From assembly GCF_052425735.1 (NCBI RefSeq), contig NC_135758.1, positions 7,068,001 through 7,132,000 on the forward strand: 64,000 nt of DNA, in the 5' to 3' direction. Position 1 is the first letter of the stretch. Each line of letters begins with the position of its first letter. The position numbers and the translations under genes are program-made. The notes beneath the pieces are model-generated. The model searched no databases and had not been told where the DNA came from. It saw nothing but the letters and a program-made list of their open reading frames with translations. This document shows positions 3,401 through 64,000 of this stretch, one piece after another. The DNA is from Oculina patagonica (taxonomy: Eukaryota).

Positions 3401-5794
3401 TCGGATCTCATAAACGAAATTGCTTTTCCTCAGACACTTAGATGCATTTAGTTTTAGAAGTGCTGAATTTGAATAAGAAAGAATAGCGAGTCACGTTTTG
3501 TGAGTGTGACTCGTGTGTTATTTCATGTTCTAGTAAATATATTTTTTCTTGATAGAGCATTTTCTAAATATGTAGATGGTGTATCTTCGTTCCTCATTCA
3601 GCCAAAAAAAAAGGAAAGAAAAACGTAATCTGAAAGGAATGCCTCTCCTCTCATTTATTTTTCAATCTAAATTGTCGTAAGGCGATTCAATTCTACCTTC
3701 ATTTGAAGAAACCATTAGGAGTTAAAAGTGGTATTGCCATTTTTGTTTAAAAAGTCTGCACGGCGAAAGATAAAGAGAACAGCCAGCTATCTTTCAAGCT
3801 AAATTGTTGCTGCGGAGACGATTATTTCTCTACTTACACCTGTGGAAGCTTTTATGAATTGAAATTGTGTATCGCGACGCCTCAAAACTCGAATTCCTCA
3901 TACTGACTACAGTATATTTCTTCTAATATCTCCTAGTTGATGAATTTCTATATTCTCATCATATATCTGCTTAGGAATATATTGCTTTTGTAATGAGAAT
4001 AGAGACATTGATGTTGGTGTCTTCTTGGTTAGCCTGCGCGCAGACGTTGCCATGTTTTTCATTTGTTTTGAGAGTTAATCTTGTAAATAAAGAGGAAATG
4101 TCAAAGTAATTTAGGTTTTAATTTGTGCCTTCCGCTAAAGCTTTGTAAGCAACGCTTTGTGCTTGTGTTTATACCACATAAATGGAGTTAATCTTCATTT
4201 TATACTTGGAAAACATGCGATTTTAAACGTGTTGAATTTGAATAAAAAACCGAGTCACAGATTTGTAAAGTGTGGTTCGTGTTCACTTGCATGTATCACA
4301 TATCTTCGTTCGTTCGAGAAAGTAAAGAGTAAAAACCAGGGTTGTTTTACGATATGACAATCAAAATATCTTTTTCCTCATTTAGCAAAAACGCTAGTGT
4401 GTAGAAAAATTAGTGAAAATGGATAAAAAAATGTTTCCCTTTAGTGGAGAAAGAAGTCTCACGGTTCTGGAAACCTTTTTGTTACTTCAATACAGTTTTC
4501 CCCAGTTGATGTTTTTCTATTTTCTCCTTACCTATGTCTGTGACAATATGTTAATATTTTTTTAGAGAACTTACGATTTGATAATTTTGAAAAATTATTA
4601 AAATGGTCAATTCTAGTTTTGTCCTTTATTTTTCTCTTCAAAGTACTCTTGCGCAGTGTTTTTCATTTGTTTTGGTAATTAACATGTAAATTTGAGGATT
4701 TATCATGTCAACAAAAAGGCCAAATGTCAAAAGAAGTTAGGACTTGATTTAGATTGTGCAAATGTTGCGAGAGAGCAATTATAAGCCTAATTAGAAAATG
4801 GATTCATTATGAGTTGTGTGTGTTTTAGACGCCGGATGAATAGAAGGGTCAAACTGTTCAATGTAAATATAAAGCGCATTTAGGAAATTGCATGAAACTT
4901 AAAATGAGGTCACGAAGGTGATATTTTTGCTTTTTGTTGATTTTTCTAGCCTTTCTTTTTGTTCGACGTTCACCTTGGCAGCGTGCACAATGGAACAAAA
5001 CCAAATAAAAATACTCAGAATGTAAACATATCTAAAATTAACGCAAATTTCCAACAGAAATTTGACTTTTTTTGTTCAAAAGAAATCATAATTCCTTGTG
5101 TCACGTGAAATTTATCACGTGATGTTGACAAATATGGAAAGCCTTTTCACTTAAAGGGACTGTGTCACGGCTGAGTTAAGTTTATTTCATAAAGTTTCGA
5201 CAAATACTCGGAATGAAACTTAATGTTTGCAAAAAAATTGCTTTTTTGGATCTATAAATGACAAAATCATAGCTTTATTGCAACCAAATATGTTTTCCGC
5301 GCGTTATAATTTCAAGTTACAAACAAACGAGATTAACTTTGAAAACTGTTCAGCCCAACAACATTAAAAACCCATATCGCAGTCCGTTTCAATTCTCGTC
5401 ACTTTTGGCCATCCGTACCTTCTTTTGTATTTATTGTATCACTGAAATGTCCCTTCATTATTTGAAGAGGTTTTTTTTTATAGTGTGCCGAATTTGATTG
5501 TCATTTCCCATGCCTCAATTTGGCTAAAACCGTGACACAGTCCCTTTAATTGACATTTAAAAAACGCAACATGTGCCTTTTCTAGCACTTTTATAACATT
5601 CTTGAAACTTACTGCCTGCTGATAAAACTGATAACTGATGATAATTTGATAAAGTCTAACAAATTTCCTTTTTATTCTTTCGCAGTTTTTTAGACGAAGT
5701 TATTCATTCCACTGGCCAAGGGGCGGTATCTAGAGCCCGGGCTTCCTCGGGCGGAGCACATTACAGATCGTCTTACACGTCATCGTTTTTCTGA
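493..5794 (+). CDS. VPS45: VPS45, last three coding exons (duplicate copy)
   Basis: Exons 493-614 ([13 protein letters not shown]...LRDR), 1293-1424 ([17 protein letters not shown]...[11 protein letters not shown]) and 5686-5794 (FLDEV...SSFF*). All are GT-AG and phase-compatible. One A/V difference from the other copy in the last exon. Confidence 0.9.
5155..5545. mobile_element. Kolobok-type non-autonomous DNA element
   Basis: TTAA-AGGGACTGTGTCACGG...CCGTGACACAGTCCCT-TTAA: 16-bp perfect TIR and TTAA TSD. The duplicate lies at 31636-32026. Confidence 0.75.
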
Positions 5795-8687
5795 GCTACA
5801 TCGATAGTAATTTACAAGGCTATTATTAGGAATTTTCTGCTTAGGAAATCAACCACGACTGCAACCAGAACGACGCCGCACAGTAGGTTTATCGAGCAGT
5901 AGAATGATAGCCGTCCTCTACAACCAAATTCTGTTTAATTTATGTTGAGCACAAAGGTACGGCCGGCAAAATTGTTGCGCTTTCTTGAGTGGCTCTAGAA
6001 GTTCTTAAGTAAAAAATAAATTCATCTCGTTTTGTTTTTTACGTCCTTGGCGTCGCTGTTGTGGTTGCTTTTATAACTCCCACCATCTCTAAAGTTAAGT
6101 ACAAAGCGTACACAACGAAATAGATCCATATGAAGAAATTCTTAATGTTTTCAGTAAGATTAAAATTTTGAACAATAATCCAATAAATAGTTTAAAGTTG
6201 TTCTTTCACGCTGGTATTTGTTAGGAGAGAGAATGGATTCCATGCAGTTGAAACTGATCGTTACCACATTCTTACAATCCAGCTTTCGAAAAAATGTGGC
6301 GGTTGTACATTTCACCACAAAACCTTGCGAACCTAACACAGCCAATAGAGCACAAAAAAAAAAAAAACATTTCTGCGAACTTCGTCCATGTACTAACAAC
6401 ATTCTTCGTGCAGGGTTTGAAGTTTTTAGTTTCTGTGCGTTTTTACGAGCGTTTTTAGCTTTTTGCGCGCTAGGAACTATAAGTAAATGTACGTTTTCGC
6501 GTTGGACCGCTGTAGCAATTAGCATTCAGTTAGTTTCCCGTACATTGAACTTTTTGCGGACGCTTTTGTCTCCTGACTGGAATAGTGACGCGCAGAAAAA
6601 TTAAAAGTTGTCGAATAAGAGCACCTCGAACACCTAAAATGAAAACACATATGCACAGTAAAACAAAGAAAGAAACTTAGCTCCAAGCCGAAAGTGTTAA
6701 TTTCTACTTACTGCTTATAAGCATACATTTCTTTTAATGTTAAGTAAAAAAAAGTTAGCGATGCAGCAATTTTAGACATCATGCGTCTCTAATTGAGGAT
6801 GTCTTAGTTGCGCCAAATGTCTGGACGAAAATGTGTTGATGTTGTATAAAAATAAACTTCAGTACTTTATACATTATGTAACTTTGAGATTAAAGATTGA
6901 AATACCATCACAAGTGTGCTTTTGTTCAATGCCATACACTGATAACTTTTACGCCGGTTATCGGAGAAGTGATATAAAATGGCTTGCACGAGACACGCGA
7001 GAGCGATGTCTTTTCGATGCCAAACATTTTCGTCTCCAGATGGATGCCAAAACTCCCACACTTATGACGTAATAACCCCCGACTGCTGTCTGATCGCTTG
7101 TTTATTTTGAGCGAAAATTCTAAGCTAAGCAACAACAACTAATACCTCGAGAGGGGGTACAATTAAACGTCCATCTCGTAAAATAATTTCTTGTCCGTCG
7201 ATTCTTGTACTTGTTAATTAATTAGTTTTGAGCGCTTTCGGGCCACTGGTTTATCGTTCACAAAAAAAAACTCATTGCCCACGCTTTATTGCAATAGAAA
7301 GCGAAATATTTCTTGAAATCGCCAAATTAAAAAGTCTTGGCGAGACCATATGCCCTTCCCACGGTTTAATTGTTTTCCATGCTACTGTGATAATTACGAT
7401 CATTTTCAGTACTTTTTATTAGAATTTTTAAAAATCCAAAAGTTTGGTAATACTGCCTTCGAGTGAAAAGATGTAAAAATAAAAGAAAAAAAAGTAAACG
7501 TGAATCACGCTTTATTGGCTTTGGTCGTATTTTGATTGGCTCTATGTGAAATGACAGCCAATAGCATTCGATAATTCATTTTAGCCCTCTCAATTATCCG
7601 GCTTTCAAGCAGTTCAAAGCTTAGAAAAAACATATTACCTTCTAGTGGAAAAAGAGCTATAGCGATGTAATGAGAAAGAGTACGCTATCTTAAGGCGGGT
7701 ATTCACCTGAAGGCCGTTTTTCACCATGGGTTTAACGGAAATATCTCGTTCGTGTCCAAGGAATCTAAAAACCCTTCACTCATATCTTTTGCGGTGTTTG
7801 TAACTTTTTTGGGAAATTTTGGGGGATGTTTTGTAGGAGATAGTTTTTCTTAAAGAATAAGTACAATTTAGAGAAATAAGAAATATTGGAGATTTAATGT
7901 GTTTTTAAAATTAGAATTTGAAGTTAAAAATTAGTAGACGGACACCAGACCGTCTCCTGACAACCTGGAGTGCTCTTGCGTGAGGTCCAACTGTCTGGTG
8001 GTGTTTCAATTTTTTTTTTATTCAATCCCTTTTTGAACCTTAAAAAATTTCATTCAAACTCAGGTAGAACCCCACCTTATATATATTTGTCACATAAACA
8101 TTGGACAATTTTCCTCGTCACACGAGCAAAAAAGAGAAAATTGTCACCAAAAAATTACTCGTGTAAACTGGCCTTTTAATTGGCCGGCTGTAAAGTGAAA
8201 TGTTGATGGTCTAACGTTGGAGATGTCAACTGTGAGGGCGGACATGTATGAAGTAGCTCAAGGCTCAAACAATTTCCCCAGTCAATATTTTGTGAGCAAA
8301 CTAAAGTTTGTGAGATAAGATGACAATTGTTTGACCGATGTGAGACAGCAGATGTCGGCATCAGTTTTTCATTTTTAAAAGTATTAAAATAGCTCACGAC
8401 AAGAGATAGTGGTCTAAGTCAAGAGTGTACAGAGCGAAAAAATAGATTATGCTGAATAGTTTGTGCAGCAAAGGGAAAGAGAAAAACAAATTTGCGAATT
8501 AAATTAATGGCCACTCACTCACAGTTATCTACACAAGATCGAAAACGGGAAAATTTGTTGTTTGGTAAATATAACGCATCAGGTTTTTACGAACAGCCTT
8601 TTGCATCTGGCAGGAAAAAGCAAAATAGTGAAAACTAAATTTATAATACTTTACTGATCTAGTCAAGTTAGATGGGCAATACTTATT

Positions 8688-16445: not shown

Positions 16446-16945
16446 NNNNNNNNNNNNNNNNNNNNNNNNNNNNNNNNNNNNNNNNNNNNNNNNNNNNNNN
16501 NNNNNNNNNNNNNNNNNNNNNNNNNNNNNNNNNNNNNNNNNNNNNNNNNNNNNNNNNNNNNNNNNNNNNNNNNNNNNNNNNNNNNNNNNNNNNNNNNNNN
16601 NNNNNNNNNNNNNNNNNNNNNNNNNNNNNNNNNNNNNNNNNNNNNNNNNNNNNNNNNNNNNNNNNNNNNNNNNNNNNNNNNNNNNNNNNNNNNNNNNNNN
16701 NNNNNNNNNNNNNNNNNNNNNNNNNNNNNNNNNNNNNNNNNNNNNNNNNNNNNNNNNNNNNNNNNNNNNNNNNNNNNNNNNNNNNNNNNNNNNNNNNNNN
16801 NNNNNNNNNNNNNNNNNNNNNNNNNNNNNNNNNNNNNNNNNNNNNNNNNNNNNNNNNNNNNNNNNNNNNNNNNNNNNNNNNNNNNNNNNNNNNNNNNNNN
16901 NNNNNNNNNNNNNNNNNNNNNNNNNNNNNNNNNNNNNNNNNNNNN
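16446..16945. other. Assembly gap (500 N)
   Basis: Run of exactly 500 N. A round size is typical of a scaffolding join. Confidence 0.99.
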
Positions 16946-32275: not shown

Positions 32276-35200
32276 GCTACATCGATAGTAATTTACAAGG
32301 CTATTATTAGGAATTTTCTGCTTAGGAAATCAACCACGACTGCAACCAGAACGACGCCGCACAGTAGGTTTATCGAGCAGTAGAATGATAGCCGTCCTCT
32401 ACAACCAAATTCTGTTTAATTTATGTTGAGCACAAAGGTACGGCCGGCAAAATTGTTGCGCTTTCTTGAGTGGCTCTAGAAGTTCTTAAGTAAAAAATAA
32501 ATTCATCTCGTTTTGTTTTTCACGTCCTTGGCGTCGCTGTTGTGGTTGCTTTTATAACTCCCACCATCTCTAAAGTTAAGTACAAAGCGTACACAACGAA
32601 ATAGATCCATATGAAGAAATTCTTAATGTTTTCAGTAAGATTAAAATTTTGAACAATAATCCAATAAATAGTTTAAAGTTGTTCTTTCATGCTGGTATTT
32701 GTTAGGAGAGAGAATGGATTCCATGCAGTTGAAACTGATCGTTACCACATTCTTACAATCCAGCTTTCGAAAAAATGTGGCGGTTGTACATTTCACCACA
32801 AAACCTTGCGAACCTAACACAGCCAATAGAGCACAAAAAAAAAAAAACATTTCTGCGAACTTCGTCCATGTACTAACAACATTCTTCGTGCAGGGTTTGA
32901 AGTTTTTAGTTTCTGTGCGTTTTTACGAGCGTTTTTAGCTTTTTGCGCGCTAGGAACTATAAGTAAATGTACGTTTTCGCGTTGGACCGCTGTAGCAATT
33001 AGCATTCAGTTAGTTTCCCGTACATTGAACTTTTTGCGGACGCTTTTGTCTCCTGACTGGAATAGTGACGCGCAGAAAAATTAAAAGTTGTCGAATAAGA
33101 GCACCTTGAACACCTGAAATGAAAACACATATGCACAGTAAAACAAAGAAAGAAACTTAGCTCCAAGCCGAAAGTGTTAATTTCTACTTACTGCTTATAA
33201 GCATACATTTCTTTTAATGTTAAGTAAAAAAAAGTTAGCGATGCAGCAATTTTAGACATCATGCGTCTCTAATTGAGGATGTCTTAGTTGCGCCAAATGT
33301 CTGGACGAAAATGTGTTGATGTTGTATAAAAATAAACTTCAGTACTTTATACATTATGTAACTTTGAGATTAAAGATTGAAATACCATCACAAGTGTGCT
33401 TTTGTTCAATGCCATACACTGATAACTTTTACGCCGGTTATCGGAGAAGTGATATATATAATGGAACAGAATAAAATGGCTTGCACGAGACACGCGAGAG
33501 CGATGTCTTTTCGATGCCAAACATTTTCGTCTCCAGATGGATGCCAAAACTCCCACACTTATGACGTAATAACCCCCGACTGCTGTCTGATCGCTTGTTT
33601 ATTTTGAGCGAAAATTCTAAGCTAAGCAACAACAACTAATACCTCGAGAGGGGGTACAATTAAACGTCCATCTCGTAAAATAATTTCTTGTCCGTCGATT
33701 CTTGTACTTGTTAATTAATTAGTTTTGAGCGCTTTCGGGCCACTGGTTTATCGTTCACAAAAAAAAACTCATTGCCCACGCTTTATTGCAATAGAAAGCG
33801 AAATATTTCTTGAAATCGCCAAATTAAAAAGTCTTGGCGAGACCATATGCCCTTCCCACGGTTTAATTGTTTTCCATGCTACTGTGATAATTACGATCAT
33901 TTTCAGTACTTTTTATTAGAATTTTTAAAAATCCAAAAGTTTGGTAATACTGCCTTCGAGTGAAAAGATGTAAAAATAAAAGAAAAAAAAGTAAACGTGA
34001 ATCACGCTTTATTGGCTTTGGTCGTATTTTGATTGGCTCTATGTGAAATGACAGCCAATAGCATTCGATAATTCATTTTAGCCCTCTCAATTATCCGGCT
34101 TTCAAGCAGTCCAAACCTTAGAAAAAACATATTACCTTCTAGTGGAAAAAGAGCTATACCGATGCAATGAGGAAGAGTACGCTATCTAAGGCGGGAATTC
34201 ACCTGAAGGCCGTTTTTCTCCATGGGTTTAACATGGGTTTAACGGAAATATCTCGTTCGTGTCCAAGGAATCTAAAAACCCTTCACTCATATCTTTTGCG
34301 GTGTTTGTAACTTTTTGGGGTAATGTTGGGGGATGTTTTGTAGGAGATAGTTTTTCTTAAAGAATTAGTACAATTTAGAGAAATAAGAAATATTGGAGAT
34401 TTAATGTGATTTTAAAATTAGAATTTGAAGTTAAAAATTAGTAGACGGACACCAGACAGTCTCCTGACAACCTGGAGTGCTCTTGCGTGAGGTCCAACTG
34501 TCTGGTGGTGTTTCAATTTTTTTTTTATTCAATCCCTTTTTGAACCTTAAAAAATTTCATTCAAACTCAGGTAGAACCCCACCTTATATATATTTGTCAC
34601 ATAAACATTGGACAATTTTCCTCGTCACACGAGCAAAAAAGAGAAAATTGTCACCAAAAAATTACTCGTGTAAACTGGCCTTTTAATTGGCCGGCTGTAA
34701 AGTGAAATGTTGATGGTCTAACGTTGGAGATGTCAACTGTGAGGGCGGACATGTATGAAGTAGCTCAAGGCTCAAACATTTTCCCCAGTCAATATTTTGT
34801 GAGCAAATTAAAGTTTGTGAGATAAGATGACAATTGTTTGAACGATGTGAGACAGCAGAGGTCGGCATCAGTTTTTCATTTTTAAAAGTACTAAAAATAG
34901 CTTACGACAAGAGATCATGGTCTGAGTCAAGAGTTTTTTCTTGTACAGAGCGAAAAACTAGATTATGCTGAATAGTTTGTGCAGCAAAGGGAAAGAGAAA
35001 AACAAATTTGCGAATTAAATTAATGGCACCACTCACAGTTATCTACACAAGATCGAAAACGGGAAAATTTGTTGTTTGGTAAATATAACGCATCAGGTTT
35101 TTACGAACAGCCTTTTTTCATCTGGCAGGAAAAAGCAAAATAGTGAAAACTGAATTTATAATACTTAACTGATCTAGTCAAGTTAGATGGGCAATACTTA

Positions 35201-39058: not shown

Positions 39059-40318
39059 TTAAAGGTTTTCTTCCCTTGGCTTATTTTGCACGCCACGTTG
39101 AACATGGATTATTGCAGTTGTTGTCAGAATGGACGATTGATGCTTTTGGAGTATCTCCCCTTCGAAGCAGGTATTCCGCAGCGCAGGTGTGAACACTGAT
39201 CTCTTCAACATATTTTTATTATTTTGACGAAAACAATCTTCAACCGTGGCTATATTGCAGGATTCCGATCTTAACAAGCGGGTGTCTTTTACCGCGCTTT
39301 CAACTTCGGGCACATTTTTCTGTGAATCTCTCGGGACCATCCGTCTGACAGATCGCATAGCGCCAACTGCTGGCTGGATTGCTCGACGTTTTTTAAGTCC
39401 CAATAGCTCTTGCACGGCGGTCCTAAAACGGCGGTCCCTATAGCAGTAAATGATAGGGTTTATTAAAGAGTTCAAGTAGACACATGTCTCCCCCGACCGG
39501 AAAACCGAACTTGTAACACTGAAGAACCACATAACAGCCCATGGAGCAAACGAGAACAACACCACTGCGGTTACCATGAAAGTCGTCTTGGCAACTTTGG
39601 ATTCGAGTTTGGCTTTAACTAAGGCGGTGACCTGGTTGTTTTTGTTTATCTTTCCTTTCCGTACTCCAAGGTATACCATGATGTAGAAGTAAAATATCAA
39701 TATTACGAAAATAATCCCCACAACAACAAGGCCGGTGTACCAGCCTTCGACAACACTGTTGTCAACCCCAGCCGATTGCATCACATCACCTAAAACCGCT
39801 ACAAAAAACATTGACAACCAGCCGGCTATGGCGAGCTTTTTGACGCGATCTGTTGTGATGATCACCTTGCAATCCATCCATTTTCGTATCGCTACATATC
39901 TTTCCCAAGCAATCACAGTTAAATGATATAAAGAACACATGCAAAGGAAATCGTTCAAGCTCACGTTGAGCGCATCTAAGAGACAAATATGTGCAAACGA
40001 AGTTTGTCGGAATATTTTTATATCAACGGCGACAGACAACGGTATAGCTACAGCGCCAATAAGAAGATCTGTAACAGCCATGCTGGACAGCAGAATGGCC
40101 GAGGGCTTTTCAAGTACTTTCTTTCTCCTCATTGCTACAATCACTAATAGGTTTAAAAGAATGGTGCAAGGAGACGCAATGCATCGGATAGCGACTAAAA
40201 CCCAGGCATAGGTGGTGTTATTCAAGTCCCAAGTAAAGTTTGGTGTTAATGGGCAATAAAACTCCGACCTGATATTGCTGGAAGAGTTGGCGAGTGATTC
40301 TGTGGTGTTGAAGTCCAT
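39059..40318 (-). CDS. Intronless class A GPCR, 419 aa, copy or allele 2
   Basis: Same motifs as 12303-13562, with 16 amino-acid differences counted by eye. Confidence 0.92.
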   Translation of the reverse strand: MDFNTTESLANSSSNIRSEFYCPLTPNFTWDLNNTTYAWVLVAIRCIASPCTILLNLLVIVAMRRKKVLEKPSAILLSSMAVTDLLIGAVAIPLSVAVDIKIFRQTSFAHICLLDALNVSLNDFLCMCSLYHLTVIAWERYVAIRKWMDCKVIITTDRVKKLAIAGWLSMFFVAVLGDVMQSAGVDNSVVEGWYTGLVVVGIIFVILIFYFYIMVYLGVRKGKINKNNQVTALVKAKLESKVAKTTFMVTAVVLFSFAPWAVMWFFSVTSSVFRSGETCVYLNSLINPIIYCYRDRRFRTAVQELLGLKKRRAIQPAVGAMRSVRRMVPRDSQKNVPEVESAVKDTRLLRSESCNIATVEDCFRQNNKNMLKRSVFTPALRNTCFEGEILQKHQSSILTTTAIIHVQRGVQNKPREENL

Positions 40319-48938: not shown

Positions 48939-49843
48939 TGCATCAGTCAATTGAAACCCCGGCCCCCCGACCCCCGGGACTTAGCGGGGATTTAACGCGT
49001 CCAAAGCCGGGATTTAACGCACTTTTAACGGCGCGTTGGCTCCGGTGGTCGGTGGTTTTAACAAAATGTCAGTAGAGCGGGGCCGTGGAGCGGTGATTTA
49101 ACAGCACGCGATCACCTGATCCGGGGACGGCAGCCGGGATTTAACATAAAGGACTAAATGCTTTTCTCAAAATGTTCGTTCTGAGGAATCCGTTCTTAAA
49201 AGTCTCCACGCTTCTTCCTTGATAAAGCCTTTAGCGACGCCTGGGTTTGCATTTAATGTGTTTGCACGATAAAAATAGACTGATTGTACTTGGAATCTGC
49301 CACCTTTGTACACTATCGTCTCCAAGAAAGTAGTTTCTGTTTCTGAGATTTCAGCCGTGAATTATATCGTAGGGTGAAAGCTGTTTACCTTAAGATGAAA
49401 TTCTTCTATTTTGTCTCTTCTTGTGTCCCACATGAGTTTAAAAGACGTCGACAATAAATCGTTTCCAAAGGATAGCCTTATTCTATTTTGTTTTCTATTT
49501 TGGCCTTGACATGACAGCAGAAACTGCGCGATTGTCGTGCCCATGGCTGTTTGATGTGCTTATCAGTAAAAGATAATCTTTTCCATTGAATTAGAACGAG
49601 CTTTCTTGAAAGACCACACTGAGCATCTCTCTTAAAAACCTGTTAGTTACTGCAACGAAATCAAGATTTTTGTCCGTTTTTTTTTCCTGAAAGTCGATTC
49701 GGATGCCCCCTCTATGCGGGGCTTTTAACAGACGTCTAGGCCCCTAGGGCGGGGAAATAAGCCGGGTTTTATCACTTGGTAAATGTTAAATTCCCCGGTA
49801 AGTCCCGGGGGTCGGGGGGCCGGGGTTTCAATTGACTGATGCA
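48939..49843. mobile_element. PIF/Harbinger-like non-autonomous element
   Basis: TAA TSD, ~45-bp perfect TIR TGCATCAGTCAATTGAAACCCCGGCCCCCCGACCCCCGGGACTTA and subterminal GGGATTTAAC repeats. Confidence 0.85.
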
Positions 49844-49916
49844 TAAACCTTGTGGAGTCATCAGATCTTTGCAGCCTTTGATAAGTAATCACAAATATTG
49901 CAACCATCGATCCACG

Positions 49917-52202
49917 ATGAAGTATTTCTTCCACGCTATCCTGTTGGGTTATTTTGTAGCGGCACTTGCAAATTCAAATCTGACGACGAAACCCGCGAAA
50001 AATGACAACGAAACGAAGAAAGCTTCGCAGTGTAATGTCAATAATAACAATTATAACAGCTTCTTTGCCGGACCAAACTCCAAGAAAATCGAAAATATGT
50101 TTTCTGAAGTGAAGCAAGAGCTGGCCGAATTAAAACAAGAAATCAGGGAAATCAAAGAAAACCGAACTGGCGGCCCGGGTGCAAAAGGTTTGTGAGAAGA
50201 CTTTTAAAAACGCAAGCAAATACAATACTTTCAATTGTCGAGAGTGATACTGTTGTTTCAGGACTGTTTCGGTGCTCGGTAGCCTCGATAATTTCCGTTA
50301 AAAATAACGTAAAAATCCATAAAGATTGAAGCAGAACAAGTGCATTTTGGTGTATAAACATACTGTAGCTTGTTAACTGAACATTTATTTCTTGATAGTT
50401 GACAACAGTACGACGAAATCTTCACAGTGTAATGCCATTGATAAACTTCAACAGCTCTTTGCAGAACCAAACCACACCAAGAAAATCGAAAAAATGATTT
50501 CTGGAGTGAAACATCAACTGGCTGAACTTAAAGAAGACATCAAATACATAAAAGAAAACCAAACTGGCGGCCTGAATGGAAAAGGTACGGTTCGTTACAG
50601 GGACTCGAGCTCGGTACTTGTTCGATAGCTCTGCTCGAATTTAGTTTATCTCGATTGTCATACCCTTGTTTTTTATTGTTTCAGTGTCCAGTTTCCTCAA
50701 AATTTAGCCTACAAAATAATGCTTAAATATGGGTCAAATAAATAAATTGATTCAGTTTCCGCTAGCAGACCAAGTGCATCTCAATTTATATGAATATACT
50801 ATACCACCAAACTAACTGAAACTTTTTCTTTAAAGCTGACAACGACAACAGTACAATGAAAGTTACCAAGTGCAATGCGGCCGGAATAAACCACACCAAC
50901 AAACTGATCGAAAATATGTTTTCTGAAGTGAAACAACAGCTGGCCGAACTTAAACAGCAAATCACGAATAAGTGTGGAAAAGGTTTGTTAAGAAGAAACT
51001 CGTTTTGAGCCTACAAAATCATAAGAAAAAGTGAAAATTTTGAAGCTAGTTCACTTGCAGTTTGACTTACTTGCATGCCCACCACTAAATTAACTGAACT
51101 GAAAATCTGTTTCTTGAAAGCGTTTTTTAAAGATGACTGCGCGAAGAAGGCAAAGATACGTGTTTGAAAGTTTATGTATTAAGAATTTTATGTATGAAAA
51201 GAAGGTAAAGTTGATTGTATTGTACAATTTGCAGTTTACAAGAACTGTGCCCATGCTTACCACTCAGGTGAAAAAGTTAGTGGCGTGTACGTTATTGATC
51301 CTGATGGTTTGGGTGCATTTGAAGTCTTCTGTGATCAGAATACAACCGGTGGAGGATGGACGGTGTTTCAGAAGAGATTTGACGGCTCTGTAGACTTCTA
51401 CCGTGGATGGGATGACTACAAGCGAGGCTTTGGCAATCTGAATCGAACGGCGAGTTTTGGCTCGGACTGGACAAGATTCACCGCCTGACTGTAAACAGCA
51501 GTAGCAAGCTTCGCGTTGACTTGGAAGACATCCATAATAATAAAGCATTTGCAGAGTACAGCTCGTTTTCCGTGGCAAGTGAGAGGGTGAAGTACCAGCT
51601 GAATTTGGGAAGTTATTCAGGTGAGCCTATAGCTATATTTCTTGACTTAAATATAGTCTGAATCGGGTTTTATAGTCGAGTTTCCTGAAACTTTGCATTA
51701 ATATAGAGCTCGTCCTCTGTGCCTACCGTGAATAAAATCGATACTAGACGGCGTTAGCGGTCATTCAAACATGTTTTGTAAAAAGAAAAAGAAAAAAGAA
51801 AACTATTAAGTGTGATTTTGATAACCGGATGCTTTAGTCCTCTCTAGTGCTTTTATAAAAAGCAATATTAACCTTGACTTTTTTCTACTCTTTGTATGTT
51901 CTTGTTGTTCTCATTGTTTACATGTTCTTTTATTTTTTTTTTCAGGTACCGCTGGCGATTCTCTCTACCGTCACCGTGGCTCACCGTTTACCACCAAAGA
52001 TCGCGATAATGACAGTTATGGGAACAATTGCGCTGTGACTTGGAAGGGCGCCTGGTGGTACTACAGTTGCCATAACTCAAACCTCAATGGGTTACAGTAT
52101 TTCAGTGGTAAGAACAGCCCTAAAGGAATATGGTGGTATACCTGGAAATTATATGGAGCTGTAAGGAGGTCCGAGATGAAGATTCGTCCAAATAACTTCT
52201 AA
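49917..52202 (+). pseudogene. Secreted fibrinogen-related protein (signal peptide, three coiled-coil exons, FReD domain), frameshifted in this assembly
   Basis: Exons 49917-50187, 50399-50584, 50836-50982, 51235-51620 and 51946-52202, with all introns phase 1 and GT-AG. FReD motifs: GGGWTVFQKRFDGSVDF, GEFWLGLDKIHRLT, FTTKDRDND, GAWWY, SNLNG, EMKIRP. A 5-nt extra AATCG at 51441-51445 breaks the frame. Confidence 0.88.
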
Positions 52203-55200: not shown

Positions 55201-55711
55201 TGTAAGGCTGGATCAATCCTTTGTACTTGTTGCGTTGGCCTGTCTGACCTGTTTGAGTTCAACGAACTTGAGCGGTGTCAAAATTTGTAAAATCTCCCAT
55301 CAATTTTAGGAATCAGCCTGGCCAGTTGGTATCAAAAATAAAGACCTCTGGGAGTTGACGAGTCAAGAAATGATGGAAACGCAATTCAAAGGAAAATGCG
55401 GAAGTAGATAGAACATACATCACAAAAACCTCAAGAGAATTTGCTTAAGCAACGCCTCTTCAGAAATCCGTTTTAAAGTCGGCCAAAATTAGATTTTGTC
55501 GAGATAACCTCCCTATCAAGATGGCGCCCAAAATACGTGGAAAGATCTTTTTCAACGCTCTCAAGAAAAGAAGAAAAACACGAAACATTTCGTGATAAGA
55601 TGTGCAGAGTACAAAATACTCTTTCATGAACACCACTTAAAATCGTCAGTCCGGTTTGAAACTTGTTTTCGTCAAATCCATGTTTTGTCGTCACTGCTCC
55701 TCCTGGCAACC

Positions 55712-56063
55712 TCACTTGGGAACAATTGGCTTTCCCTTAGCATCATGGCTAAATGGGCAGACATGCGCGTTAAAAGGGCATTTTCCCTTTTCCTCCTGCT
55801 CTCTCTCGTTGACTTTGAGAAGCTTTTCGAAGAACTGCCCGTAAGCTTTTTTTCCCTTGCAGTTATCTCGCATCTGAGTCATCTTCTCCACGAAATCGCC
55901 AACGCTCAAGATTGCAGTTTTTGAATGGGCAGCCTCCCCTGAAAGCAGGGCACTTGGCAGCCAGACCTTTGCACTCGGTAACAAGGCCAGCGTATGGACA
56001 GACGCCTTTGCCAAAAGCTGGACACTTCATCATCACGTCGTCTAAGGTGACGCCCATGGGGGT
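55712..56063 (-). CDS. Cys-Pro-rich module 2 (terminal exon; frameshift at about 55910-55913)
   Basis: Acceptor ttttttcccaag, then TPMGVTLDDVMMKCPAF...GCPFKNC, a shift, then LSVGDFVEKMTQMRDNCKG...KCPFNAHVCPFSHDAKGKPIVPK*. Collinear with module 1. Confidence 0.75.
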
Positions 56064-56565
56064 CTTGGGAAAAAATGAAATAAATTCTTTAAATCAAAGA
56101 AAGTTAGAAATAGACCACCAATTTACAGTTTGTACCGAACATAAATCAAACTCAAGCCTTGTAAATTGTTTCTAGTAGGTTGAATTCTTCCGAGAAAATT
56201 ACCTACAGTTGCCTTTAACCTTCGCTATTTCTTTTTTGTAATATAAAGATTGAAGCACATATTCTAGCCCACTCTCGCTGTCAAATTTTACGCATAATCA
56301 TATATATAAATATAATTATCCCATTTTCAAAACGCTTCCACATTCTTTATACACTTCACATTGATGCATTAATTTTGATCTGCTCTTCATACTTCTAAAA
56401 AACAAGAAATCGGTAATGCAAATCATTTTAGGTCATTCCTGCAATGAGCCTGCACTGAAAATGTTTGTTATACTGTCATTGATTATCTTATAGGAATTTC
56501 AATTTTAAAATAAAAATTGGGGTCCTCGTCCTAACTGGTTTTAATTAGAAGCAATAGCACCTTGT

Positions 56566-56849
56566 ATAGAACAGTCTTCCCTTGGGTGCCAAAAGTGATT
56601 CGCGTTCGCTTTGGTTTTGCATTACTATGCTTACTGATTGGTCAAAAAACACCGCGCCACTTTCTCAACCAATCAGAAGTAAAACTAAAACTTAATGTGA
56701 CTCGCTCACACACGTTTCCCACGCTTCGTGCCAGCTACATGTATTTACTTTGAGTTTTGATTGGTTCTTTGAATTGTCTGTGTCCTTTGTGATTGGCCAA
56801 AGTGATTACTTTGGTTTTGGTTTTACGAGAGTCAATCAAAACTGCTCTA
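56566..56849. mobile_element. Diverged common MITE
   Basis: TAGAACAGTCTTC...AAAACTGCTCTA ends, with internal CCAATC/GATTGG motifs. Confidence 0.5.
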
Positions 56850-57384
56850 TACCCAAAAATTTCTTATTATAATGTCATCAAACCATCTACACGATTACTC
56901 GCAAAATTCACGTTTCTGGCGATTGTTTCTTATTCTACATATTTTACAGAAATACATATTTTACAGTTAAATATTCTACATATTTTACAGAAAGAAATTT
57001 AAACGAAGAGAAAAAAAGATGGGTCATTATTAATATCATTTACGAGAAAATGACGATTTTCCTCTCTGGTGCATAAAGAAAAAGCCACCATTCTTTAATG
57101 TGCGCGCGCTAAACACGCGTGATCGAAATTTTGCACAGTGCGGATGCGCAATGCAATACTAAGGAGTGACCTAAACCGTTTGTCACGCGCAACTGACCAA
57201 CCTCTTACTTCCTTATACTTCATCAAAATCAAAACAGTTACAAAAGTCATGAGAACTATGCAAATGATCACCATTGGGAAATTGGTATGATAGTTTATGA
57301 TATTTCCAACTGATACAGCGAGAAATATATGGAAACCGTGGGGCTTACATGTACAAGGTTAAAGAAGTAATAAATAAAGCATAC

Positions 57385-59487
57385 CAAGTATGGGCTTTCC
57401 ACTGGTATCTTTGGCAAACGGGCAGCCACCCTTAGTTTGAAAGAATGGACAAGCCGATCCAACGTCAACCTCCTTCTCTTTGGCAGTGTGGTGGATATCT
57501 CGGAGAAACTGCACGTAAGCAGCGTCACCCTTGCACTGGTCGCGCATCTGACCCAGCTTGTCTTCAAACTCTCCAACAGTTTGGCACCCTTTAAACGGAC
57601 AACCATTCTTGAATTCAGGACACTTGGCAGCCACGCCTTTCTTTTCATCCGGCAGATTGGAAAATGGGCAAACTTTCACGTTGTCTGCGAAGACGGGACA
57701 TTGTCGCTTGATGTCATCACGGGTCACAGAGCCTGGGTACTAAGGGAGAACAATATAGTTTAGTACTTAGTTCCACAGCGAAAACGGGATTGGGGCAACC
57801 TTATAAAGGGTCGAATTCATTGAAAGTTGTTAAGAGATTGATTGGTAACCAGTAAATGAATTGAATGAACAGTTTGTGGAGAAGAAAAGAAAGTAAACGC
57901 TAAATTAGTATTTTATTGCCATGTTATTTGGAATTTATTGTATTATTATTAAATCAAGCTTTTGTATATATATTTTGGATCGTTTAATTCCGAGATATGT
58001 ATCAATCAATCAATCAATATTAATGTCGTGTCTCTTGAGGCAGTCTTAATTGTTCGCTTCCATTGCCCCGTAGCAATCTCAGCTGCATGCTGGTTTGAAA
58101 TATTGTGGGGGGCCTTCTGTCTTAAACAATGGACTCACAGAAGGCCAGTCTTTAACAAAAAGATGTTTTGTGTGTGAATAGAGTTTGGTTTCGTGTTGAA
58201 GCTATTTATGATTTCATTGTTTTTTTAGATATCTGAATCAATCTACGCCATTCCAGAAATCAGTCTTTCAACCTTGGTGCATATTTCAACAACTTTTTTT
58301 TTCTGACGCGTGATATTAACGTAGCTTCCGACCAGCGTTAAGTCCGACTTTGACGAATCTCATTATAAAACGTGAATCAAAGTTACTTAACAACTATTAT
58401 TTTAACCGGAACATGAGAAACAGCTTTATCGACAACTTGTTTTAATTTTTAATAACTGGTACCTGCGTTATTTTACAAACAGTGTACAAATGGCGAATCG
58501 AAGCTTGCTTAACACTGCAAATTTCTCTCCTCTGAGTACACTCTTTTTTTTTATAAGAATACAGTTTTTCCGACCCAGGCTGAATATTCTTATTTTTCTG
58601 CCGATTTTAGGCTGAAAATATTCTTATGAACATTCTTAAAAAATACCGTTTGACATTATCCTTTTAGCAAGTATTGGGTAATCAATTACAAGTGTTTGGT
58701 GTCCAGATCTGTATCGTGTTACATTGTGCACATGTACCATTGCTTTTCGTTGCAGCCTCAGTGGCCGTTTTGGGTTTAAACAAAGCATTCCTCACAGAGA
58801 TAACGTGACGGAAATGAAAATACCTGATTTTCTTTTAGCTAATAACTGTCTTTTTTTCAAAATCTCAGCCTCGGGTTTATTCTTAAAATATTCTTAAAAA
58901 TTCGCAAATTTCATCCTCGATATTCTTATAAACTAGATTCTTATAAAATAAAAAGAGTGTAAGTTAGAAGGCAGGATTTCGAAGAGTGAGACAAATATAG
59001 AATATCGAAAATATGTGCTGTCCTCACAGCTGAAAGTTTAAGTAATAGTCCGTATTAAACCAGAATAACAAAACAACAAAATAAAAGAAATTAAAAGTAT
59101 TATTAATTACGAAGTTCAATTCCGCCCACCGTGCAAGTGGCGGCATTAACTTCGACAAGCCTTTGACAATTTCATATCGGTGTGCCTTTCGAAACTCAAT
59201 ACTTCATTTGCAGAGAAAAGAAGGCGGTACACTTTTACGCGACAGTGTAATAAAACTAGAAAAGGGCTAATGCCTCAAACTGACCATTGAGAAAAAAGCT
59301 GTTAAATTGCGCGGCAAAGTACCGCGAAAGCGTTTATTTTTGTTTGGCGTTAAAAAGGCGTTTCAAGATATTTATAAAGTATGCCAAAGTATTGTTACTG
59401 TCGCATTGAGTGCGCCCTTTCTTATTCCGGTTTTGCGCCTTATAAATGTGCCGGATGAAATTCACTTACTTGCTTTGAACAAGACAT
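57385..59487 (-). CDS. Uncharacterised Cys-Pro (CPxF/CPF) repeat protein: exon 1 and module 1
   Basis: Exon 59487-59470 is ATG TCT TGT TCA AAG CAA|gtaagt (MSCSKQ, phase 0). Acceptor ttctcccttag opens exon 57739-57385, YPGSVTRDDIKRQCPVF...CPF...CPEF..GCPF...CPFF...GCPFAKDTSGKPIL, ending at donor G|gtatgc. Without that donor the frame reads to a stop at 57359. Confidence 0.8.
58539..58959. mobile_element. Tc1/mariner-type MITE
   Basis: TA-CACTCTTTTTTTTTATAAGAAT...ATTCTTATAAAATAAAAAGAGTG-TA. An empty site is visible in the paralogous region at about 62975. Confidence 0.8.
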
Positions 59488-60236
59488 GTCGAGTATTAAA
59501 ACCTCTTCAAAATGTTACCGGGAAGTGGAACTCTCTCGTTGAGCAGTTGTAGTTCACTCTGTCACTGATCAACTAACACTGATGCTTCAATGCAACGGGA
59601 CAACTAAAATGTCAAGAAAATGACAGATCGTGATTGATAGATTTTTATCCTCGCAAATTAGGTAAGTGATACCAAGCCGTGAATAGAATATATGAAAACA
59701 AGATTTAATGGGGGGTCTGGATAGTCCTAGTCAAAACACAGCTTAATAATTAAAGCTTAATATACTGCAAAAAAAAAAAGGGAGTCACAATTTACAAACA
59801 CTTTCGCAGAAAAATGTGTTTAAATGTATCGTTATGTACGTATAAATTACACCACAAATTCTTGAAGTCTTTCTGTGACTGCAATTTTGGTATTTTTCGT
59901 ATAAGAACACTTCAGATATACATTAAAAATCGTCGTTAAAGTATAAAAACAATAAAATTGTTCCGTTGGGATGGAATGAAGGGTCCGTAAATCCACCATA
60001 GCGAGAGTCCATAAGTAGAGGAATTTGTTTCTGTAATCACCTTTGAAAGGACTAAGCTTCTTCCTGCTGTAACTGAGTGGGGTGTAAGTAAGGCGAAGGT
60101 GACTGTAATTTTACTTTGGAATCTATCTCTGACGGAACTAAGTTTATGGTCATTTGAGATGTAAAAAGAGATTCATACATTGAACATGTCTTCCCCAGAT
60201 TGACGTGTCGCCTCCAGTTTTCAAAAATAACGCCAA

Positions 60237-60506
60237 ATAACGCCTTTGCAATGACATCTGCAAATGGTTAGTTATTCTCGACTTCTCTGATAAGGACGAT
60301 AAGCCGTAGGCCCCGTCTCCTGCATCTTCAGTCAGTGTTATGGTTAGCAGGGGACGTAATAGAACCCATGCACACACTTATCGTAAAGAGTAAGGCATGG
60401 AGTTCCCGGTGCTGTGGTCTGGTCTTTGCCGATCGTGCTGTGTACTGATACTATATTAGCTGTACAAGCTACTCTGAAATCCGAGGGTAAAAAACATGAA
60501 GAAGAA

Positions 60507-60552
<46 letters not shown>

Positions 60553-60558
60553 ATGATG
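60237..60558 (+). mobile_element. 5'-truncated Deu/Nin-domain-like SINE ending in a (GAT)n microsatellite
   Basis: gataaggacgataagccgtaggccccgtct...ggacgtaatagaacccatgcac...aagagtaaggcatggagttcccggtg, then (GAT)n at about 60506-60558. Confidence 0.65.
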
Positions 60559-61693
60559 AACGGTAATAATCCGAAACCTATATAGAGTTTTCTCTATGTT
60601 ATTTCGCCAGTAATTTCTCAACTAGACAAAAACCGTCTACCACCAGTTGCAAGAAACTATTTTTAAAGTGTCGGCATAACAAAACTATGCATACACAGCC
60701 GCAACACAGCAGGCACATTTTTTTGGACAGAACACTCAGTCAGTGACTACAATAAAAGTGTCGAACTGTTTTCATTGATCAATTAAAAATCTCGGATAGG
60801 GGAGATATTTTAGTGCATTCATTCAAGGTTGTTTTCGTTTCTAAATACTGTGATATGTCATGTGAAATCCACATCTGAACAATCGCACAAAACCACTGAG
60901 TACAAGGTTCAAAGTTAAAAATATCGTTATATGATTAAGCATGTGCTTATTAGATTTTTGAGTCGCCTCCAATTTTGGGAAATCACTATTAAAAAATTCT
61001 TAATCCAGAACTGATGTAGAGTTTTCATAATCATATTTATCGTAAAGAGTAAGGCATGGAGTTCCCGGTGCTGTGGTCTGGTCTTTGCCGATCGTGCTGT
61101 GTACTGATACTATATTATACTGATACTATACTGATATCATGGTATATTTAGCACTATTTAGCTCAAAATAACTATTTTTAAAATGCTGGCAAAACAACAC
61201 AAATATTGTATTAGGTTATTATCATTATTTTTTATTATTATTATTATTATTTTTTTTTAACTAATTTAGGTGGAATACCTGTAAACTAGCTGGTGTGACA
61301 TTTCTGCAATGTCACACCTTATTGCTAAGCGTATGACACATTAAACGACTATTGTATTGTATTGTATTGTGATGAAAGCAAATAATAGTTAAAAGTTGAA
61401 GTTGAAAGTTATCACAAATAAAACAGAAGAAACAATAGGCCATTTTATTTTTTGAGAGGACACCCAGTCAATAAGTACAATAAATGTGTTACACTGTTTC
61501 ATGAACAATTACAAATATCGAAAAGGGGGCATATTTGAATGCATTTATTGAATATTGTTTTTGTTACCAAATACTGTGAAAAGAAGTTTTGTTACGATAT
61601 TAAAAACTGTCTTTAAACCGAAGAAAATCGCCGAAAGATATATAACTTACTGTACAACGATATTTAAATATCAAAGCTAATAAAGAAGGGAAC

Positions 61694-63815: not shown

Positions 63816-63974
63816 TTTTACGGGAGTTTCGGCGTTTCGTTTAACGTTGAAAAGGCATTTCAAGATAAAGTATGGCCAACTATTGCTATTGTCTTATCAA
63901 ATGTGCCCTTTTATACACATGCCTTTAATTCCGAGTTTTGCGCCTTCTAAGTGTGCCAGATGAAATTCGCTTAC

Positions 63975-63992
63975 TTGCTTTGAACAAGACAT
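63975..63992 (-). CDS. Second copy of the MSCSKQ first exon of the Cys-Pro gene
   Basis: Identical 18 nt ATGTCTTGTTCAAAGCAA followed by gtaagc. The flanking intron 62950-63974 is homologous to about 58515-59469. Confidence 0.65.
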
Positions 63993-64000
63993 GTCGAGTG

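Follow-up and report, generated by a model that had tools for sequence, protein, structure and literature searches.

The 64,000-nucleotide stretch of the Oculina patagonica genome analyzed here (the window: NCBI RefSeq assembly GCF_052425735.1, contig NC_135758.1, positions 7,068,001 to 7,132,000) contains, at 55712–59487 on the minus strand, a coral gene whose two modules each carry six Cys-Pro (CP) motifs. Judged by sequence comparison, this module is an N-terminal accessory domain of heme oxygenases across several eukaryotic supergroups, and it is also found in proteins made of modules alone. Drawing on an analogy with mammalian heme oxygenase-2 (HO-2), we favor, with moderate confidence, a reading in which the module is a heme-capturing, redox-sensitive accessory domain that has been expanded in anthozoans as soluble proteins, the window copy being a recently disabled paralog. 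A full-text search of the literature found no description of the domain or of these coral proteins, and databases label the relatives 'heme oxygenase', 'hypothetical' or 'uncharacterized'.

A domain family with heme oxygenase fusions

A phmmer search with the module against 1.84 billion representative proteins returned 111 relatives, 42 of them at E ≤ 1e-10. The first-pass annotation of the window had proposed looking for fusion partners such as heme oxygenases, and this check was positive: in 23 of the 111 relatives a heme oxygenase domain is present as well (Pfam PF01126, E 1e-40 to 1e-65). Wherever a near-full module was called in these fusions, it lies N-terminal to the heme oxygenase domain, and the long relatives (398–596 aa) have one N-terminal module and then Pfam Heme_oxygenase. 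The similarity of the module to the region ahead of PF01126 covers residues ~8–117 of the query, with phmmer E-values of 1e-10 to 1e-36. Named sources of the fusions include the oomycetes Aphanomyces astaci and A. invadans, the perkinsid Perkinsus chesapeaki, the dinoflagellate Gymnodinium smaydae and the amoebozoan Balamuthia mandrillaris.

The N-terminal domains of the protist and cnidarian heme oxygenases (for example A. astaci XP_009827403.1) are true homologs of the module, with phmmer E down to 1e-36, and domains of the XP_009827403.1 type share with the window module both its length and its three CPxF...CPF pairs. Compared with the fused enzymes, the window gene and its paralogs have neither a heme oxygenase domain nor a tail anchor, and they carry two extra cysteines per module (in KGC and QCKG) whose conservation is limited to the coral and anemone proteins. 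No significant Pfam family was found in the module exons, and the catalytic heme oxygenase domain is absent from the window gene. Modules also occur apart from the enzyme in other species. In the choanoflagellate Salpingoeca urceolata, a protein combines three modules with a hydrophobic tail and has no enzyme domain, and the 328-aa Actinia tenebrosa protein LOC116294377 is a stand-alone array of three modules and nothing else. The latter has a GEMRD.CKG core and is intact, whereas the window copy is frame-broken.

The coral also has a heme oxygenase of its own, outside the window, and matches to the enzyme in the coral genome fall on contig C7 only. This gene (G000:C7:297858-302498, loci L013 and L014) has three N-terminal modules in one 496-codon frame, then the catalytic domain, a single C-terminal CPF motif and a tail anchor. 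Coral and protist heme oxygenases alike have one or two C-terminal CPF motifs ahead of the tail anchor. Near the coral enzyme lie module-only frames, at C7:268713-269417 and C7:293692-295005.

Conservation and predicted fold

In an alignment of 56 domain instances, the six CP cysteines are 91–100% conserved, the prolines that follow them are 86–100% conserved, and the aromatic residue is nearly invariant. The domain can be described as three CP(A/V/E)F-x2-5-CP(F/Y)(K/A) pairs around a helical hairpin. Pairwise dN/dS within the family is 0.15–0.35 for the deeper comparisons, and these substitution ratios show purifying selection to act in the family. The retention of every CP position in both window modules had earlier been taken as a sign of selection; this holds for the history of the family, and not clearly for the window copy as it stands today.

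An AlphaFold2 prediction made with the 56-instance alignment gave a compact, moderately confident model (pLDDT 78.8, pTM 0.71), in which a helical hairpin at residues 55–93 has the CP loops packed around it. The pLDDT is 82–90 in the helices and 69–73 near the first CP pairs. When the module model was compared with the PDB by Foldseek, nothing was returned at E ≤ 0.001, and a profile search of the PDB sequences with the 56 sequences also returned nothing. A fold search of the AlphaFold DB clusters gave only the domain's own family, the ESM Atlas gave TM < 0.45 by fold and no known family or fold by features, and VIA-align found no known fold among 48,161 chains (best Z 4.5). The best fold match was A0A2B4RE17, an uncharacterized 245-aa entry of AlphaFold DB (Foldseek E 2e-9, TM 0.76, first 116 residues aligned). 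It is a stand-alone protein with the length expected for an intact two-module coral protein, and it is intact, in contrast to the frame-broken window copy.

A multi-copy family in the coral genome

A six-frame search of the coral's own genome with module 1 of the window gene gave 27 matches. At six loci an intact module 1, 84–88% identical to the query, is followed 0.5–1.4 kb on by an intact module 2. With the window locus included, the coral has a gene family of at least seven two-module loci. The exon junction of the paralogs is in phase (GKPILSPDYIV | TP...), and this two-module gene model is supported because a contig from a second organism, described below, shows the same join. The ATG of exon 1, its GTAAGT donor and the core of the untranslated region (UTR) are conserved ~2 kb upstream of four of the paralogs.

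Read from their sequence, the intact paralogs should encode soluble proteins of ~245 aa, made up of a first exon of 4–6 residues and two ~115-aa Cys-Pro-rich domains. No obvious signal peptide or membrane segment was seen by eye in the coral proteins. The earlier description of a stand-alone protein in which no other domain is visible is right for the family, given the lack of a Pfam domain in the module exons and of an obvious signal peptide or membrane segment. Several otherwise intact paralogs have single motif changes: CRAF at locus L004, CTFF at L007, CPL at L002 (gene at G000:C1:7144470-7146254), a Cys-to-Ser change at L003 and a Cys-to-Tyr change at L005. The family may tolerate the loss of individual motifs, or it may have other decaying members.

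Gene model at the window locus

To the window gene we aligned, over 55600–59550, contigs from four public sequencing runs. Run X1 is DNA from organism A, X2 comes from an independent coral metagenome study, and X18 comes from organism B. Runs X7 and X18 are RNA-like, a designation that is the guess of the tool; they cover exons and transposon-like repeats and have zero depth in unique intron sequence.

The gene has three exons on the minus strand. The coding part of exon 1 (59470–59487) reads ATG TCT TGT TCA AAG CAA, or MSCSKQ, and ends in a GTAAGT donor; the 5' UTR reaches upstream to at least 59550. Intron 1 (57740–59469, ~1.7 kb) is bounded by GT...AG, and depth in X7 and X18 is zero over it except in a repeat, while the DNA runs cover it. 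Exon 2 (57385–57739), placed by its frame and by paralog alignment, begins after a ccttag acceptor at 57739 and encodes module 1 (57739–57386). This module is an intact 118-codon frame with eight cysteines, six of them in CP dipeptides (in order, CPVF, CPF, CPEF, CPF, CPFF and CPF), and it carries a 2-codon in-frame insertion (ADNVKVCPF vs. ADKVCPF in the paralogs). Intron 2 (56064–57384) was defined from the sequence and by comparison with the paralogs; if it were retained, translation would read past exon 2 as GMLYLLLL and then stop. Exon 3 (55712–56063), from a cccaag acceptor to the TGA at 55714–55712 that is the stop codon of the family, was placed from the sequence and the paralog alignment and holds module 2 (56063–55715), with nine cysteines, again six in CP dipeptides, and a split frame. 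The 3' UTR extends below 55600.

Both modules contain the core (T/S)VG(E/D)F..K..QMRD.CKG..AY.QF and have GKPI at the end, and each holds all six of its CP dipeptides as three CPxF...CP(F/Y) pairs. The residue or residues after CP are V, F, A, E+F or Y in all 12 cases. At the DNA level this confirms what the first-pass annotation had described, namely two ~118-aa modules with a shared core, GKPI ends, 12 CP dipeptides and 17 cysteines; the count of cysteines is correct, but the extra ones in KGC and QCKG lack the wider conservation of the CP cysteines. Nowhere else in the 64-kb window does an open frame contain more than two CP dipeptides.

Two other gene models were rejected. Module 2 could be read as a gene of its own from an ATG at 56057, but this ATG is absent in most paralogs (TPLEVTL), and an RNA-like contig connects exon 2 to exon 3. 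The modules could also be the N-terminal part of a 5-aminolevulinate synthase. There are, however, no catalytic exons or large minus-strand frames below 55712, no Pfam Preseq_ALAS match was obtained, and the paralogs stop at the same codon.

Each intron contains a repeat, of high copy number in intron 1 (~58504–59031) and of very high copy number in intron 2 (~56524–56919). Their summed k-mer depth is at least 1e5 in the DNA runs, and they are abundant in the RNA-like runs as well. Both are probably fragments of transposable elements.

Two frame-breaking lesions in the window copy

By alignment of the DNA to the six paralogs and to the DNA contigs, the first lesion is a loss of 17 nt from the end of exon 2 (57383–57386, minus strand). 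In six of six paralogs the exon ends CTT TCTCCnGACTAyATyGT G|GTAyGT, in phase 0, and encodes GKPIL-SPDYIV. The window copy instead reads CTT G|GTATGC and is in phase 1. The only GT donor of exon 2 that precedes an in-frame stop is this one, at 57384–57383, in phase 1, whereas exon 3 begins in phase 0. The second lesion, also seen in the DNA alignment and the contigs, is a 4-nt insertion, TCTT in the sense direction, at 55908–55911 on the minus strand. It sits between TGCAA and GAGCGTT, where the paralogs have TGC AAG AsC GTT (C-K-S/T-V), and it breaks module 2 into two frames. The frame shifts of the two lesions do not compensate one another. By conceptual splicing, the frame read after the phase-1 join of exon 2 to exon 3 ends at a TGA at 55906–55908 (minus strand), and canonical splicing gives a predicted product of 176 aa, made up of the exon 1 residues, module 1 and a tail of 52 aa read out of frame.

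The two-module protein cannot be translated from the window copy because the donor of exon 2 is in the wrong phase and the frame of module 2 is split; unlike the window copy, the paralogs can translate it. The two-module product that had been proposed for this locus can therefore come from the intact paralogs and not from the window copy itself, with its 17-nt deletion and 4-nt insertion.

The lesions are not assembly errors, which are ruled out by DNA contigs of X1 and X2 together with a contig of X7. Two DNA contigs of X1, contig 1 (55600–55977) and contig 3 (56815–57432), are identical to the window over both lesions, and contig 18 of X2 (56799–57432) is identical to it over the deletion site. 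Contig 24 of X7 spans 55600–56019 without gaps, so that the transcript carries the 4-nt insertion. The DNA thus contains lesions that disrupt the frame relative to the intact paralogs, as in a pseudogene. Transcription, in contrast, is not lost, with RNA-like contigs covering exons 1, 2 and 3 and not the introns.

Splicing of exon 1 to exon 2 at the window locus is also apparent in X7. The match of contig 27 (depth 12.9) to the window stops at 57739, and the contig continues for 203 letters beyond this point. A depth of 12.9 across the 81 nt of 59470–59550 explains the depth of 8.5 in the bin 59428–59550, and a variant at 59509 has equal depth. Contig 27 apparently represents a transcript of this locus in which exon 1 is spliced to exon 2, as worked out from the depths, the join itself being unlisted. 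A much deeper X7 contig (k-mer depth ~4300) departs from the window sequence at 55912 and continues with the intact paralog reading K-T-V-G-E-F. In X7 the paralog contigs have a k-mer depth of ~4300–5000, compared with 13–20 for the contigs of the window locus, a sign that the intact paralogs are well represented in this run, though k-mer depth is a poor measure of expression.

An intact close relative was found in organism B. Contig 12 of X18 (752 nt) joins 57389 to 56064 with 20 extra letters between them and has four gaps in exon 3, that is, its junction is in phase 0, the 17 nt are there and the 4 nt are missing. Its exon 2 is 97% identical to that of the window, nearer than any paralog in the coral genome, and this relative is probably an ortholog in another species.

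Status of the window copy

For the window copy, the likeliest status is that of a paralog disabled recently, a reading that we rank above a working one-module variant. Compared with the paralogs it shows a dS of ~0.3 and dN/dS of 0.15–0.33, values which show that it was under constraint during most of its history. Changes specific to the window copy have a ratio of nonsynonymous to synonymous of 3:3 in module 1 and 13:13 in module 2, small counts with ratios that lie between constrained and neutral. Exon 3 of the intact X18 relative differs from that of the window three times as much as exon 2 does. As far as these small counts go, the sequence pattern is what one would expect if the copy was disabled recently and constraint on module 2 was then relaxed.

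Some observations weigh against calling the copy disabled: module 1 remains intact and is transcribed, and the changes specific to the copy do not look clearly neutral, so that a one-module product may still be in use. In such a case the window copy would be a working one-module variant that makes the 176-aa protein of module 1 and a new tail. The intact module 1, with dN/dS of 0.15–0.25 against the paralogs, and the transcription of the locus with apparent splicing of exon 1 to exon 2 speak for this, as does the position of the stop in the last exon, where nonsense-mediated decay would not be expected. Against it stand two independent indels that break the frame, a tail made of out-of-frame sequence, and a number of window-specific changes in module 2 that is four times that in module 1. 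The close relative in organism B is intact, and the k-mer depth of the locus in X7, for what this measure is worth, is low beside that of the paralogs. We therefore regard a working variant as doubtful and retain the recently disabled paralog as the preferred reading.

A proposed role in heme handling

Repeated fusion of a domain to one enzyme usually means that the domain serves the substrate or the regulation of that enzyme. We propose a role in heme handling because the domain is repeatedly fused to heme oxygenase and because its motifs are of the C-P-hydrophobic type. The heme link predicted for the window gene in the first-pass annotation gains support from the homology of the module to the N-terminal domains of heme oxygenases, and on this comparative basis a link of the module family to heme handling is supported. 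By analogy with the CPF motifs of mammalian HO-2, the CP cysteines would ligate ferric heme as thiolates. Each CP pair would bind ferric heme when reduced and release it upon oxidation to a disulfide. In its fusions with heme oxygenase, the domain would gather heme and hand it to the catalytic pocket for degradation, while the free anthozoan proteins could act as cytosolic heme buffers or carriers.

The likeness to mammalian HO-2 lies in the CPF-type motifs, their pairing and their attachment to a tail-anchored heme oxygenase. In HO-2, however, there are two motifs in a flexible C-terminal linker, whereas the coral and protist domain has six motifs in ~115 aa, is N-terminal, is built with a helical hairpin, is repeated one to three times and also occurs in free proteins. 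The domain profile did not detect HO-2 chains among the PDB sequences, and for this reason we treat the likeness as an analogy, with homology not shown. Heme-regulatory motifs, including those on HO-2, are already known; the folded, repeated and widely conserved six-motif domain and the module-only proteins are new. The CP motifs of HO-2 bind heme via cysteine and contribute to heme loading into the catalytic centre (PMC8808069), and works cited in that paper describe them, as far as they are represented there, as a thiol/disulfide switch.

Several points weigh against a heme-capturing domain. AlphaFold2 models the domain as compact, whereas classical heme-regulatory motifs sit in flexible segments. 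The Pro and Phe, though invariant, may have a purely structural role, and six invariant paired cysteines would also suit a metal or iron-sulfur site. A predicted complex of the module with the heme oxygenase core of P0042 and heme had a score of 0.00; we list it here, but the partner folded poorly without an alignment, and the score is not evidence either way. Finally, in HEK293 cells the HO-2 motifs are dispensable for heme buffering (PMC8808069).

In one alternative, the domain would be a zinc or iron-sulfur site, the fused form would accept released iron or relay electrons, and the free coral proteins would be buffers of iron or other metals. Heme oxygenase releases iron and requires an electron donor, which would suit such a role, and the invariant cysteines are paired at C-x6-9-C in a predicted fold that is compact and not disordered. 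There is also a short local resemblance, C-P-F/Y ... C-P-F, to the CCCH zinc fingers zf-CCCH_DUS3L and zf_CCCH_5 of Pfam (E 0.005–0.03). These matches are, however, far under the curated cut-offs, at 15–17 bits vs. a cut-off of 30, and there is no conserved third Cys or His and the spacing is different; the modules are not members of the CCCH zinc fingers. More generally, CxxC spacing, a conserved His and a fourth ligand are all absent, and the fold searches matched no metal-binding domain. A Pro and an aromatic residue after Cys are the signature of heme-regulatory motifs, unlike known Zn or Fe-S sites. On balance a metal site is unlikely.

The strict pairing of the cysteines would also suit a pure thiol-disulfide redox sensor or a structural disulfide module that has no ligand and tunes the activity or localization of heme oxygenase to the redox state. 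The description of the HO-2 motifs as a thiol/disulfide switch, among the references of PMC8808069, points the same way. A relative from Planoprotostelium has, by eye, a hydrophobic N-terminus that resembles a signal peptide, and it may be secreted, where disulfides are expected. On the other hand, inspection by eye showed no obvious signal peptide in the coral proteins, which would be expected to reside in the reducing cytosol. Moreover, the switch of HO-2 gates heme binding, so that this alternative overlaps with the heme-capturing domain and does not replace it. We consider a ligand-free module very improbable.

In a fuller and more tentative form of the heme-capturing reading, an ancient, undescribed eukaryotic domain would take up labile ferric heme and pass it to heme oxygenase, and in anthozoans it would have been freed and amplified as abundant soluble heme buffers or chaperones, the window locus being a recently broken copy. 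We regard this scenario as plausible, short of likely.

Other features of the window

A further exon-1-like copy, found by the genome search and 87% identical over 201 nt, lies at 63945–64000 on the minus strand, where the end of the window cuts it. More copies of exon 1 and the 5' UTR, 84–93% identical, extend beyond the window (G000:C1:7131945-7132144, 7135322-7135529, 7140312-7140453, 7152129-7152169 and 7155314-7155354). Some are located between the window gene and the next intact paralog, ~20 kb off, and the others past that paralog. No module exons were found beside the three copies that lie between the two genes. The extra copies may serve as first exons used alternatively, or they may be what is left of deleted duplicates. 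A long ATC/GAT microsatellite at 60469–60621, ~1 kb upstream of exon 1, would give poly-His when read on one strand and poly-Asp when read on the opposite one.

Elsewhere in the window, an intronless 419-aa frame on the minus strand (39059–40318) matches rhodopsin-family seven-transmembrane receptors (Pfam 7tm_1, E 3.9e-22). Two identical open stretches of 66 aa on the plus strand, at 7222–7419 and 33719–33916, are 26.5 kb apart, with an assembly gap between them at 16446–16945; their identity suggests that a segment was duplicated recently or that they belong to a repeated element. Similar tandem frames at 49839–50195 and 50392–50628 (plus strand) have a common ending, ...AELK.(E/D)I..IKEN.TGG..., and no significant Pfam match. 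They may be exons of a duplicated gene for a secreted protein.

Significance

To our knowledge few dedicated cytosolic heme carriers have been identified, and the storage and movement of labile heme in cells are still an open problem. The domain described here is compact and has six motifs of the heme-regulatory type. It occurs in fusion with heme oxygenase in SAR protists, Amoebozoa and Cnidaria, and it is free in a choanoflagellate and as module-only proteins. As one small soluble protein, it is a directly testable candidate for a heme carrier. Such a role would point to an ancestral eukaryotic heme oxygenase with a heme-collecting domain of its own, and to the C-terminal motifs of vertebrate HO-2 as a later analogue. 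The window copy itself matters less, being a damaged member of the family. For the coral, a multi-copy family that is seemingly well represented in RNA-like runs would be relevant to iron and oxidative stress, and possibly to bleaching.

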